From positions 191,844-255,843 of the forward strand of contig JAWQFM010000027.1 in assembly GCA_033442325.1 (NCBI GenBank): a stretch of 64,000 bases of DNA, given 5' to 3'. Both the position numbers and the translations under genes were made by a program. The DNA is from Salpingoeca rosetta. Taxonomy: Eukaryota > Protista > Choanoflagellata. Positions 4,501 to 61,811 of this stretch are shown piece after piece. Below the pieces are notes generated by a model that saw nothing but the letters and a program-made list of their open reading frames with translations, did not search any database and had not been told where the DNA came from. How positions within the stretch are numbered: position 1 is the stretch's first letter; each line of letters starts with the position of its first letter.

Positions 4501-7500
4501 TTTGTTGCCGTGAAGGAGCGTGACAAGCTTGAGGTCATTCACCAACACACGTTTTCACACGCAACCTTGACACTTGTGCTCGATTTGCTGTTTTGCGCAA
4601 GCACNNNNNNNNNNNNNNNNNNNNNNNNNNNNNNNNNNNNNNNNNNNNNNNNNNNNNNNNNNNNNNNNNNNNNNNNNNNNNNNNNNNNNNNNNNNNNNNN
4701 NNNNTGTAGATTGACTGCTCGCGGTGCCGTGCAATCGCCATGCTCCTTCAGTGAAAAAACAAGTACACACTCGCGTTCAGTGCAAAGTGTGGTGGGCCAG
4801 AGCACACACACACACACACACACACACACACACACACACACACACACACACACACACACACACACACACACACACACACACACACACACACACACGAACA
4901 CGAGAAGGCTGAGATCAAGACGGAGGCAGCCAAGTTGCGAGGATTGCGTCAGGCACTGAAGACCCAGTGGAAGGAATTCGACACACTCGCACTCCTTCAC
5001 GCGTAAGCGCACACAACCCCGCTCCTTCCAGGCTGTCTGTGTGTGCGTGTGCGTTGCTCTTTGTGTGTGTGTGTGTGTGTGTGTGTGTGTGTGTGTGTGT
5101 GTGTGTGTGTGTGTGTGTGTGCGCGTGTGCCCTCCCTCCCCTCCCCTCCCTCTCTTCCCTTCCTTCCTTCCCGGTGATGCTTGCGTGTGTCATGCAGTGT
5201 GCCCCACACGCGCGCATTCCTCTTCTCACATGCCTGTTTTGGTGCTGTGCTTTGACTTGCCCTTTCTGTTGGCCATTTCGGGCAACTGCCACAACAGGAA
5301 AGTGCACGAATTGTTCAAGCTGGCCGGCGTCTCGCCTCCAATCGCTTCAAATGCAGAGCGCGTACAGCCCACGGGCGTGCAGGTCTCACCTACCACCAAG
5401 ACCGGGGACAGTGTGCCCTTGGGTCTGGATGAGGTGCCGTCGCAGCCACTGCAACATGGCGATGATGTGAGCATGACGATGGCTGCCGCTGCCATGCCAA
5501 AGGTTGGCGCATCCCAAGCTGGCCGACAGCGCTGGCTCGGTGCTGTCTCCGCTCCCGCATCATCATCATCACCCTCTTCTTCGACACAACAGTTTCCAAC
5601 GCCACCACCACCACCACCAGCTGCTGCTGCTACAACGAGTGCACCCACACCCACAACAGCAACAGCAACACGACATGTGGCACGAAGGTCCACGCTGCTC
5701 CCACCGCTCGCGCCAGTGGACCGACCAAAGTTCCTTGCGCTCAACACTACAGATCCTGCAGTCAACCTCCTTCCAGATATCGTCGCAAACTACGATGGTG
5801 CGTGTGTGTGAGTGTGTGTGTGTGTGTGTGTGTGTGCGTGCGTGCGTCTGCTTGTGTGCGCGTCTGCCTGCGTGCGTGCGGCATTTTGACCCAACCCCTG
5901 TTCACAATTGCATGTTCGTTTACACACAAACACACACACACACACATATACGCACGCACACATACGCACGCACACACACACACGCGCGCGCACACACGCA
6001 CGCACACACACACACACACACACACGCATACATCTGTTCAGGGTGCACGCTGGACATGTGGACGAGCCTGCCTGTTGTGATGAGCGGGTGCGAGGGCCTT
6101 TCACGGCGGCTCAACGGAACGTATCTCGCAGTGACGCCCGAAGACGCGACGGCGCTCGGACGAGAGGATGATGACCTGCGTATGATCTACCACAAGCCCG
6201 CCCAAGGTGCCGCTTCAAAAGAGAGAGAGAGAGAGAGAGAGAGAGAGAGAGTGTGTGTGTGTGTGTGTGTGTGTGTGTGTGTGAGGGAACGATGCATGCG
6301 TGCGTGTTTTGTGTTCTGATTCTCATGTCAGCGTGGCTTGCGTGACGATGCTCATACTCAGCTGTCTCTCACATACACACGCGCACACACACACACACGT
6401 GCACGTACACACGCACGTATACCGACACGCACACACACATGCACACACACAACCACATACACACACACAACCACATGAACACGCACACACGCACACACAC
6501 AAACCGCACACACACACAGACGATGCGCCTGACCTGTTTCTGTACTTTATGACCAAGGACAACACGTGGAACGTTTCCAACAAGCCGTTTTCAGCCTGTG
6601 AGTATTGCACATCCACCTCCAACACCTAACCACGCTTGCATGCGATGACAACCCAATGGGGCAAGCACATTGCATGACTGCCGCCGCTTGCTCTGTGTTT
6701 GCTTGTTGGTGTGTGATTTGTGTGGCCGCATGCATGCGAGTGCTCCATGTGTGATTGCCCTCTTTTTTCTCTCGCTTTCTGGGGTCATGACATTGTCTCA
6801 TTGTGCACCATTCCAAATTGATTCTCACCTCTTTACTGCTTGCTCCACACACTCGCATGCACATGTACGCAAACACATGCCCACGTACGCACACGCACAC
6901 TCGCATGCACACACGTATACGCACACATACACATGCATACGTATACTCGTATACGCACACTCGCATGCACATGCACGCGTGGAAAAAGATGTGTACGCGT
7001 ATGCACAGGAGGATACGTTGGTGCCGTGGTGCGTGACACAACCATGGTTCATTGTGTTTGGCAGCCACGCGCTGCACGCATCACGGGACGTCAGCGTGAC
7101 AACGCCGGCATATGCGCGCACCTTCAATGGCGACCTGTTCACATCAGACCACAGCCCCGTGTACCCTCTTGACGAGGCGGAGCAGGCCAGCAGAGCACGT
7201 GAGCGCGAGCGACAGGCATTGCGCAATCTTCGCCTGCAGCAGAAGACGGCGTGGTTGGTCGAAGGTGATGCATCGGTGTCGGTACCAACCGGTGTACAGC
7301 CACCCATCTTTGGTGATGTGTTCCGGCCGCACGCAGCAGCGACGGGCTCCACATCAGCACCATCGACCACGCGAGATTCTGTCTCTAAGAAGGCACCGTC
7401 ATCATCATCACCCTCAACTGCAACAACAGCAGCAGATATGGCGGCGACCGCACGCACAACAGGCGCACCCAGGAGCAAAGCATCCAAGAAAACAGGCAGA

Positions 7501-8853
7501 GACAAAGCAAGCAAAAAGGCAACAGCACGCCAAACACCGCAGCCGAAGCAGACGATACCTGGACTCTCTTCGCTGCCAACCCTCGCGCCGCACAACGCGC
7601 GCGGGCCTCTTGCCTTCACAACAGCGGCAGCCACACAGCAGCAACTGCAGTTACAGCAGCAACAGCAGTATCCGCAAAGCTATCAGCAGCCACAACACTA
7701 TCCGCAAAGCTATCAGCAGCGACAACAACAACAACAGCAGCAGCAGCAGCAACAACAACAGCAACAACAACAACAACAACAACAACGGCAACATCAACGG
7801 CAGTCGATGCCACCGCTTGCCGCGGCAATGGCTGGTGCCCACCCGTCCATGATGATGCCATACACACGCATGCCACAGATGCAACCACAACAGCAAATGA
7901 TCATGATGCAGGGCTTGACACGCCAGCCACCCACCTTTCCTCCTTTTCAGCAGTTGATGTATCCTTCGTTCCCTTCCCCCGCCATTCCCCAGCCCTGGCT
8001 GAGCACGCAGCAGTTCATGATGCCGCACGCACCTGCACCCGTGTCGTGGACTCCAAGCATGACAACAGCAGCGGGATCGTCGATTGCACCGGTTTGTTTT
8101 GCTGCTGCCACCACTGCCCGGCCTGCCGCTGTCACGGCAAACCCAATGCAAGCGCCGTCGCCACTGCTTTCTGCGGCAGCAGCGACAACAGCGACAACAG
8201 CAACACAACCACGAGCAACAACCATGACGATGCCAACAACAACAACAACATCCGCTTCATCGGCCTCCTCCACGTCTGTGCGCGGCTCTCCTGCCCTGTC
8301 AACAACCACGACTACTACCTCGTCGTCGTCGTCGTCATCATCATCATCATCATCTGCATCATCAACAACTACAACCACATCATCATCATCATCATCATCA
8401 CCATCATCATCGTCGTCGTCGTCACCGACCTCCTCGCCGTCGTCGTCGTCGTCGTCGTCGCTGCGGTCTTCAGCATCACCATCGCCTGTGCCGGCAGACA
8501 CGGCTGCGGAGGTGCCACCGCCTAAGGGCCGCCGTGCGTCGCTGAAAGGCAATCATACACGACAACAACGCACGGCTGGGGCTGCCTCGACCACCAACAG
8601 CGGCAACAGCACACGCAGCAGCGGCGGCAGTGATGTGCATGCAGCGGGCAGCAAGCGCACGTACGACTCACCTGATGCCATGCCACCAGACCTGCGCCAG
8701 CAGTTCTTCACGCCAGTCCCCGGCAAGCCGAAAGCCTCGTTTGCGCGGCCACAGCATAGTCGAGTGCGCAGCAAAGCGGCGAAGGAGGAGGAAGAGGATG
8801 AGGAAGACGAGGAGGGCTCGGGACATGGTTCCAAGAAAGCCAAGCGTGCTTAA
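1506..8853 (+). CDS. PHD finger / zinc-knuckle (PZP-type; PHF14/JADE/BRPF-like) chromatin protein with long low-complexity Q/S/T/P regions; multi-exon, interrupted by two gaps
   Basis: Exon 1506-~2445 ends in ICSVC...[15 protein letters not shown]. Exon 2675-2784 gives [30 protein letters not shown] (PHD end plus zinc knuckle as in PHF14). Further exons at ~3349-3412, 4112-4220, 5282-5797, 6042-6206, 6520-6597 and ~7009-8853; the last ends in basic NLS-like SKKAKRA*. A single gene across the gaps is inferred. Confidence 0.65.
4273..4360 (+). repeat. (GTT)n microsatellite in an intron
   Basis: About 29 perfect GTT units. Confidence 0.95.
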
Positions 8854-61100: not shown

Positions 61101-61811
61101 GGCGGAGGCGAAGAGGCAATACCGCAAAGTTGGCTTTACACACGCGTGCCCAGAGGCGTACGTTCATGACGCCCTGTGTGTGTGTGTGTGTGTGTGTGTG
61201 TGTGTGTGTGTGTGTGTGTGTGTGTGTGTGTGTGTGTGTTGCGAGAGAATTTGGGAATGCGTTCGTGATGGTGGCGATTGTGCCTGCTTGTCTGCCGTGT
61301 TTCCATCACGTAACCACGCGTGTGCGTGCGCTGCAGGACGGAGAAGGTGGTGCGAACGCAGCCGATTCACCTGGACGAGTACATCTCCCCCAACATCCGC
61401 ACGTGCATCAACACAAGCAAGCTTGTGCGCCAGCTCGCAGAAGCGTGAGTCACGCGCTGCATGTGTGTGTGTGTGTGTTTGTTTGTGTGTATGTGTTTGT
61501 GTGTTTGTGTGTGTGTGTATGTGTTTGTGTGTGTGTGTGTGTTTGTGTGCCTGTCGCTTGTGTATGCGTGTTTGTAGCTGTTCTCACTCACTCACTCACT
61601 CACACCCCCCCCCAACCAAACACACACACGCACGCACAATGCCTGATGTGCACAATGCCTGATGTGCAGCATCGGGTGGGACACGGGCAAGCAAGAGTTT
61701 GCGCGCAACGTGCTGTTCTCGGAGCTGGTGCTGTTTCTCAACAACGTGTCCTCCTGTGTCGGCCTCAAGGACAGCGCCACCGACGACGACGAAGAAGAAA
61801 AAGAAGACTGA
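55115..61811 (+). CDS. MTA/RERE-family corepressor: acidic N-terminus, BAH, ELM2, SANT and GATA-type zinc finger
   Basis: BAH: [48 protein letters not shown]2: [37 protein letters not shown]: [19 protein letters not shown]|[29 protein letters not shown]-like: CVHCTTT|DSLSWR...[13 protein letters not shown]. Ends DDDEEEKED* (61811). Confidence 0.88.

Follow-up and report, generated by a model that had tools for sequence, protein, structure and literature searches.

The 64,000-nucleotide stretch of Salpingoeca rosetta DNA analyzed here (the window; contig 27, positions 191844-255843, of a 55.4 Mb assembly in 68 contigs) carries short introns, most of which are G/T-rich in their 5' part and C/A-rich in their 3' part, largely as microsatellites. 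This polarity is real and genome-wide, and the two ends of an intron are not co-selected as partners. The explanation that we prefer, and to which we give a probability of about one half, is that the two parts are independent, RNA-level composition domains that would serve intron definition and that have been inflated by slippage. Their action in splicing and the identity of the factors that may read them are both inferred.

Statements about the genome as a whole rest on the window plus 20 loci, each 10 kb long and each taken from a different one of the 20 largest contigs. Coding cores were taken on either strand with a self-trained coding model, and introns were called locally between same-strand cores using only GT/AG ends, frame, and a minimal consensus; introns containing N were omitted from all statistics. 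A self-trained splice position weight matrix was left out because it drifted to GTGTGT donors and risked circularity, and a whole-window Viterbi gene finder on codon usage alone, which merged everything into one gene per strand, was set aside. The filtered ab initio set holds 195 introns (30 from the window and 165 from the other loci), with a median length of 246 nt. Stranded RNA-seq from three 2026 runs was examined over 13211-19210, where it shows a plus-strand gene; it gives the exact junctions of five introns, and five more are fixed by colinearity of their exons with the Pfam LMBR1 domain.

The polarity can be seen without a gene model because a (GT)n-(AC)n order is unchanged by reverse complementation, and it therefore reads GT at the left and AC at the right of the plus strand for genes on either strand. 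Two-letter tracts of the GT or AC type cover 10.1% of the window, versus 1.7% for AG/CT, and adjacent tracts separated by no more than 120 nt occur as GT->AC 105 times versus 51 times as AC->GT (p=1.8e-5). Coding cores are bordered by an A+C-rich stretch on their left (skew -0.17 to -0.29 over 90 nt) and by a G+T-rich one on their right (+0.12 to +0.25 over 90 nt), with a reversal of sign at ~130-150 nt; the window and the 20 other loci are alike in this. Again irrespective of strand, 300 putative introns between cores comprised 53 with GT..AC tracts, 178 that were one-sided, and 69 with neither; the opposite order, AC..GT, was found in only 5 (53 versus 5, binomial p=3.5e-11).

When strand is assigned, 167 of the 195 ab initio introns have a higher skew at the 5' than at the 3' end (p ~1e-25), the (G+T)-(A+C) value being +0.34 in the 5' part and -0.11 in the 3' part. 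The polarity holds separately in the window, the other loci, plus-strand genes, and minus-strand genes. An earlier note on this DNA, made from the letters alone, had claimed that many introns on both strands are G/T-rich 5' and C/A-rich 3', and had proposed positional skew as a check; the claim is borne out by these numbers, except that the 3' domain is on average C-rich and G-poor rather than purely C/A. On logical grounds, a polarity between (GT)n and (AC)n, which as DNA form an identical duplex, can be sensed only on one strand, in practice as RNA.

Approximately the first 60% of an intron is taken up by the 5' domain (G.35, T.34, compared with a T content of.18 in exons), which scales with the length of the intron; the C/A domain (C.35-.39, G.16, A.21, T.25) occupies the final 80-120 nt, and introns shorter than 150 nt lack it. 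Tracts of at least 20 nt are found as GT in the 5' half of 69% of introns and as AC in the 3' half of 42%, the opposite placements being GT in the 3' half (35%) and AC in the 5' half (only 13%). Perfect microsatellites, present in 79% of introns, number 165 GT to 18 AC in 5' halves and 73 AC to 46 GT in 3' halves (odds ratio 14.5, p=1.4e-21). The median distance from the donor to the first GT tract is 21 nt, and in 50 of 145 introns this tract begins within 10 nt; GT tract midpoints are equally common in the second and the first quintile of the intron, and the median distance from the last AC tract to the acceptor is 32 nt. Mirrored 5'-to-3' gradients are seen for all six complementary motif pairs (GGG/CCC, GTGT/ACAC, GAGT/ACTC, GCGT/ACGC, GGT/ACC, and AGAG/CTCT); per 100 nt, GGG falls from 1.74 to 0.34 and CCC rises from 0.56 to 3.15 along the intron. 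Outside the two-letter tracts the G+T skew is ~0, yet G still declines from.30 to.20 and C increases from.26 to.35. The variety of repeat units asserted in the earlier note is likewise present, as GTGC, GAGT, GGT, CAC, and ACTC.

The five GT..AG junctions in the RNA-seq and the canonical 5' end of the U1 small nuclear RNA (snRNA), AUACUUACCUG, mark these as ordinary U2-type GT-AG introns. The donor consensus is GT(G/A)NGT, and (GTGA)n, (GTGC)n, and (GT)n arrays are thus reiterated donor-like units; 87% of the called acceptors are CAG. The most frequent donor type resembles GTGCGT and is mismatched to U1 at +4. We considered, and rejected, an altered U1 5' end that would fit GUGCGU donors, because U1 is canonical; two equal-scoring U1 genes (both 105.7 bits; C11:720361-720524 and C12:1451701-1451864) were found, and the 5' end was read in the first of them. 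An origin of the introns from introners or transposons was also rejected, since an all-against-all BLAST of the 195 repeat-masked introns returned only residual tetranucleotide-repeat matches.

Pairing between intron ends

The earlier note had gone further and proposed that the two halves of an intron pair, bridging the splice sites as a common mechanism of intron definition. At a 20-nt threshold, 5' GT and 3' AC tracts occur together in 50 of the 195 introns, compared with 56 expected, and the odds ratio for co-occurrence is 0.35-0.92 over all thresholds and filters, that is, without enrichment. Among the window introns alone the ratio is 1.0-4.1 and not significant; the length-controlled correlation of GT and AC tracts is -0.19, and the association of tracts across exons is equally flat (odds ratio 0.88-1.28). 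Stranded tables were relied on because a strand-free table is spuriously negative, a 5' GT tract reading as AC on minus-strand genes; a position-wise GT/AC cross-correlation was dominated by a few long arrays and therefore told us nothing.

Predicted folding gave the same picture. Native introns have a minimum free energy (MFE) of -0.270 kcal/mol/nt versus -0.264 for dinucleotide shuffles (p=0.66), which is no advantage, and they fold worse (p=3e-4) than chimeras in which a 5' half is joined to the 3' half of another intron (-0.289). The comparison of native with swapped halves, suggested in the earlier note, therefore went against pairing as a common mechanism. Duplexfold applied to the first and last 100 nt yielded -44.8 kcal/mol for native and -48.1 for chimeric combinations, and -63.9 versus -64.0 kcal/mol in the subclass with both tracts; duplexes between two 5' ends are as good as those between a 5' and a 3' end. 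A perfect Watson-Crick stem of at least 12 bp between the halves is present in 9% of native introns and in 15% of chimeras. Repeat types are often mismatched between ends (GGT with CA, GAGT without ACTC, GT with CCA), and the non-repetitive yet equally polar intron 18789-19067 has a folding z of ~0.

Because there is neither co-occurrence within introns nor a native folding advantage, the two ends are judged to be independent. Both tracts of at least 20 nt are found in 26% of the 195 introns (40-50% in the window), and pairing is thus possible for roughly a quarter of introns; it leaves the polarity unexplained, and no selection for pairing is visible in the statistics. What survives of the proposal is that some introns, such as 14412-14650, are predicted to form a bridging hairpin; as a common mechanism it is not supported by co-occurrence, by a gain in folding, or by long stems.

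Complementary AC...GT arms were also seen across putative exons, at 4802-4890/5034-5122 (89 nt, 91%) and 42040-42125/42432-42517 (86 nt, 85%), an exon-looping geometry; complementarity across exons is about as frequent as across introns.

Explanations of the polarity

In the mechanism that we prefer, introns (median ~250 nt) would consist of two RNA-level composition domains: a G/U-rich domain that begins directly at the donor or close to it and comprises (GU)n, (GUGC)n, (GAGU)n, (GGU)n, and GGG, and a C-rich, G-poor domain over the last 80-120 nt that comprises (CA)n, (CAC)n, (ACUC)n, CCC, and CUCU. Each domain would be an independent and position-specific signal for intron definition, read as single-stranded RNA by small nuclear ribonucleoproteins (snRNPs) or RNA-binding proteins. 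Replication slippage would enlarge an already two-letter sequence into microsatellites, many of the 5' arrays being reiterations of donor-like GU(G/A)NGU. Pairing between the domains would then be a by-product, available in about a quarter of introns, and it may aid some of them.

Candidate readers are encoded in the genome. A gene with the TDP-43 N-terminal domain (TDP-43_N) scored 69.6 bits, above the cut-off, at C10:1830616-1830789; exons of PTB/hnRNP-L-family genes are present at C6:2055476-2058477 and C15:631845-633752, and a U2AF65-like gene was seen exon by exon at C14:1399573-1401735. No Piwi (Argonaute) domain was found in the whole genome, nor was a Dicer dimerization domain, for which the control of the search was weak; there is one A_deamin gene (C5:1048539-1050039). 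Going by this gene content, protein reading of the domains is plausible and tolerance of double-stranded RNA (dsRNA) conceivable, which obviously does not amount to proof of a mechanism.

The alternative advanced in the earlier note, structure-guided splicing in which GU-rich 5' and CA-rich 3' domains pair, bridging the splice sites as a common means of intron definition (in effect the teleost system inverted and with more repeat types), accommodates the complementary motif gradients and the 26% of introns (40-50% in the window) that carry both tracts. It can also point to the long stem in 14412-14650 (z -3.9), to 74-nt arms of 100% complementarity at 47968/48268, and to 5'-3' cross pairs at 0.146 per nt compared with 0.106 in shuffles; long intronic dsRNA may be tolerated, given that no Piwi domain was found. 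However, its predicted partners are not co-enriched, native folds equal dinucleotide shuffles and are worse than chimeras, native duplex energies are inferior to chimeric ones with 5' ends pairing as well with each other as with 3' ends, perfect stems of at least 12 bp occur in only 9%, and repeat types are often mismatched. Moreover, 178 of the 300 inter-core introns are one-sided, the stem in 14412-14650 begins at position +4 of the intron and would mask the U1 site, and a U2AF65-like gene is present; we consider this explanation distinctly improbable. Unlikely too, in our judgment, is a non-adaptive origin, whereby high slippage seeded by motifs close to splice sites (GTGNGT donors, and the C-rich tract plus CAG) produced domains that are idle in splicing, with purifying selection acting only against cryptic signals such as AC-rich or AG-creating sequence near the 5' end. 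It fits the perfect microsatellites in 79% of introns, the GT tracts that begin within 10 nt of the donor in 50 of 145, the identity of the donor consensus GT(G/A)NGT with the repeat units, and the K-M (G+T versus A+C) skew of ~0 outside tracts; at least four of the five assembly gaps in the window adjoin such repeats, suggesting arrays that are long and very unstable. But slippage is strand-symmetric and cannot by itself yield GT:AC = 165:18 in 5' halves, GT midpoints do not favor the first quintile over the second, the G-to-C gradient persists outside tracts and in non-repetitive introns, and domain sizes scale with intron length. A third idea, that 5' (GU)n arrays adopt the left-handed pUG quadruplex (~12 GU needed) and so mark or organize the intron, draws on the perfect GT arrays of at least 12 repeats in 32 of the 195 introns and on the occurrence in human introns of pUG repeats that lack CA partners (PMC12962679). 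However, just 16% of introns have such arrays, most 5' domains are interrupted or built of other units (GUGC, GAGU, GGU), and both the fold and its readers are putative here; its probability is very low indeed.

Several observations also tell against two independent domains as the definition signal. The link from domains to splicing is putative, and an enhancer built of GU arrays is odd, since these are potential decoy donors. Most introns in the statistics are ab initio calls, only 10 being validated, and the slightly negative GT/AC association may be partly attributable to strand mis-calls. In the subclass with both tracts (26%), native introns are 8% more stable than shuffles (-0.311 versus -0.288, p=0.012), and pairing could matter there; 14412-14650 folds into one long bridging stem with an MFE of -115.7 kcal/mol and a z of -3.86.

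Introns and assembly gaps of the window

The window is eukaryotic nuclear DNA of 55.6% G+C with five assembly gaps; its genes include receptor kinases with leucine-rich repeat (LRR) ectodomains and an LMBR1-domain membrane protein. In the latter, the exons are colinear over positions 29-57, 62-99, 101-152, 159-220, 349-441, 441-468, and 471-501 of the LMBR1 hidden Markov model (HMM), which fixes 13923-14249, 14412-14650, 14844-15106, 15536-16210, and 16951-17209 as introns. Four of these five, together with one of the five defined by RNA-seq, had been cited in the earlier note. All 12 introns that it cited exist, with GT..AG ends and the composition it described; some of its boundaries are 1-3 nt off (14412 not 14413, 14844 not 14843, 61445 not 61446, 55827 not 55830). 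Local intron calling recovered seven of them to within 3 nt. The individual introns are as follows.

5798-6041, plus strand: intron with (GT)n/(GTGC)n 5' and (AC)n/(ACGC)n 3', repeat types matching; exact ab initio call, inverted repeat of 79 nt at 82%.
13477-13701, plus strand: intron with (TG)31 in its 5' part and a short CA/CG-rich 3' end; RNA-seq junction in three runs.
13923-14249, plus strand: intron with (GT)n then (GAGT)n, i.e., reiterated GTGAGT donor-like units, and a C-rich/CA-rich 3' end without (ACTC)n; between LMBR1 HMM 62-99 and 101-152, zero RNA depth over 14011-14210.
14412-14650, plus strand: intron, the exemplar of GT...CA, with a predicted bridging hairpin; between LMBR1 HMM 101-152 and 159-220, zero RNA depth over 14411-14610.
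14844-15106, plus strand: intron with a GT-rich 5' part and (CA)52 3'; frame and LMBR1 colinearity.
15536-16210, plus strand: long intron, (GTGA/GTGC)-rich 5' and CAC/CA-rich 3', holding the gap 15797-15896; flanking exons in phase 0/0 and LMBR1-colinear.
16951-17209, plus strand: intron with (GGT/GAT)n 5' and (CA)49 3', repeat types mismatched; between LMBR1 HMM 441-468 and 471-501.
17873-18103, plus strand: intron with (GTGC/GT)n 5' and a C-rich, non-repetitive 3' end; RNA-seq junction.
18186-18346, plus strand: exceptional intron with AC/ACTC only and no GT domain, skew by thirds -0.28/-0.89/-0.05; RNA-seq junction.
18408-18659, plus strand: intron with a short GT-rich start and then (CA)81; RNA-seq junction, exactly at the coordinates of the earlier note.
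18789-19067, plus strand: non-repetitive intron, G/T-rich in its 5' two-thirds and C/A-rich in its 3' third; RNA-seq junction, fold z -0.03.
21949-22272, minus strand: intron with the same polarity in transcript orientation; exact ab initio call.
32959-33218, plus strand: GT-dominated intron with a short ACC/CA end, acceptor at 33203 or 33218, both in frame; ab initio call and sequence.
41335-41557, plus strand: intron with (GT)n/(GAGT)n 5' and (CCA)n 3', repeat types mismatched; exact ab initio call.
43432-43923, plus strand: either one 492-nt intron in which GGT..GT..AC..ACC repeats are nested or two introns flanking a 42-nt exon, 43658-43699; sequence, alternative gene model.
47956-48340, minus strand: intron with a 74-nt GT/AC arm pair, 100% complementary (47968/48268); inverted-repeat search and ab initio call.
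55827-56188, plus strand: exceptional intron, GT/GAGT-rich over its whole length; ab initio call and sequence.
61445-61669, plus strand: intron with (GT/GTTT)n 5' and (ACTC)n/CA 3'; ab initio call and sequence.

The first third is richer in G+T than the last third in nine of the ten validated introns, 18186-18346 being the exception. That the architecture is a tendency with exceptions had been allowed for in the earlier note, and its examples 55827-56188 and 13923-14249 are indeed of that kind.

At least four of the five gaps adjoin GT or CA/CAC-type arrays, and the assembly therefore probably breaks at the longest repeats; the intronic repeats explain why gaps fall in introns. The gap at 29035-29619, for example, has (GT)n to its left and a C-rich tract plus CAG to its right. 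Reads spliced to the acceptor at 13387, downstream of the gap 13111-13210, carry ~30 nt from the end of an upstream exon. This sequence has no match anywhere in the window, and a search of all 55.4 Mb that permitted one mismatch did not find its final 22 nt. The upstream exon is thus absent from the assembly, sequence is missing at this gap, and its two sides are not continuous; LMBR1 HMM positions 1-28, corresponding to the first coding exon or exons, are likewise missing from the assembly at 13111-13386. The gap 15797-15896, by comparison, lies inside intron 15536-16210, both flanking exons of which are phase 0 and LMBR1-colinear; order and frame are consistent across it, and a small hidden exon there is conceivable.

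The sequenced RNA came from a strain that differs from the assembly at several sites. Copy-number variants of a Thr/Pro-rich coding repeat occur at 16722-16765 (joints back 44 or 27 nt), a 3-nt GTC insertion follows position 19094 in ~95% of reads, and differences at 19189 (A>G) and 19199 (C>T) are fixed. Bins 13611-13810 and 15611-15810 show spikes of read/contig depth on both strands, and "opposite strand" joints link ~13667-13687 with 15681-15701; the spikes were judged most likely to be multi-mapping of GT/CA-flanked low-complexity reads from elsewhere in the genome. Elsewhere in the window, a perfect (TGT)29 array at 4273-4361 was scored as a minus-strand coding core, probably a false call. 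The 1134-codon open exon at 22946-26350 (plus strand) has LRR receptor kinases as its nearest protein-atlas look-alikes and belongs to a receptor-kinase gene that continues to ~28.2 kb.

Comparison with known systems

For gene prediction in this genome, the polarity is a strong indicator of strand. Should the domains prove functional, they would constitute a natural extreme case of intron definition encoded by composition and repeats, in ~70-80% of introns rather than the 2.3% at most found in fish. Salpingoeca rosetta is editable by CRISPR. With functional domains it would become testable whether intronic GU/CA repeats are protein-bound enhancers or bridging duplexes, how decoy donors within GU arrays escape use, and whether repeat recognition by TDP-43 and hnRNP-L predates animals. 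No published description of this architecture in choanoflagellates or other protists was found, subscription journals lying outside the search. Only tentatively, and at less than even odds, do we suggest the fullest version of the argument: that a two-domain RNA code (G/U-rich 5', C(A)-rich 3', mostly microsatellites) defines most introns in a close unicellular relative of animals, that it arose independently of the repeat-bridged introns of teleosts and with the opposite polarity, and that its readers are TDP-43-like and hnRNP-L/PTB-like proteins, with direct GU:CA bridging serving in a subclass.

Intron definition can be composition-based, as in the U-rich introns of plants. The S. rosetta introns resemble these in that their composition contrasts with that of exons, but they have two polar domains instead of a uniform U/A richness. 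In animals, intronic CA repeats reportedly act as splicing elements through hnRNP L, and UG repeats through TDP-43 or CELF; such elements regulate the alternative splicing of particular genes. S. rosetta has the same repeat sequences and encodes a TDP-43_N gene and PTB/hnRNP-L-family genes; unlike the animal elements, however, those of S. rosetta are near-universal and fixed in position, and their binding by proteins is putative.

Short GC-rich human introns have G-triplets toward the 5' and C-triplets toward the 3' end (McCullough & Berget 2000, as cited in PMC4691745). Those introns share their polarity with the S. rosetta introns, and in both the gain in stability over shuffles is small or absent; whereas the human triplets lie in the first and last 40 nt, the domains here are dominated by GU and CA microsatellites and cover most of the intron.

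The (AC)m-(GT)n introns of teleosts and lamprey (Lin et al. 2016, Genome Res; PMC4691745) are the precedent on which the earlier note drew. They make up 0.09-2.3% of fish introns; in zebrafish, AC follows the 5' splice site and GT precedes the 3' splice site, the two repeats are co-enriched across introns, and their folds are about one third more stable than shuffles (PMC4691745). In that class the repeats are reportedly needed for splice sites to be paired correctly, and splicing does not depend on U2AF2; S. rosetta encodes a U2AF65-like gene. The likeness lies in complementary dinucleotide repeats at opposite ends of short introns, and in single introns that are predicted to bridge; to that extent the precedent was apt, but the fish polarity is the opposite one, which went unremarked in the earlier note. 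In S. rosetta, GT 5'/AC 3' is found in 50 of 195 introns and the fish order, AC 5'/GT 3', in 5 of 195. Furthermore, ~70% of the introns have a 5' GT tract and ~26% have both tracts, there are more types of repeat unit, and in contrast to zebrafish, there is no co-enrichment of the two ends and no overall gain in stability, the 8% gain being restricted to the subclass with both tracts.

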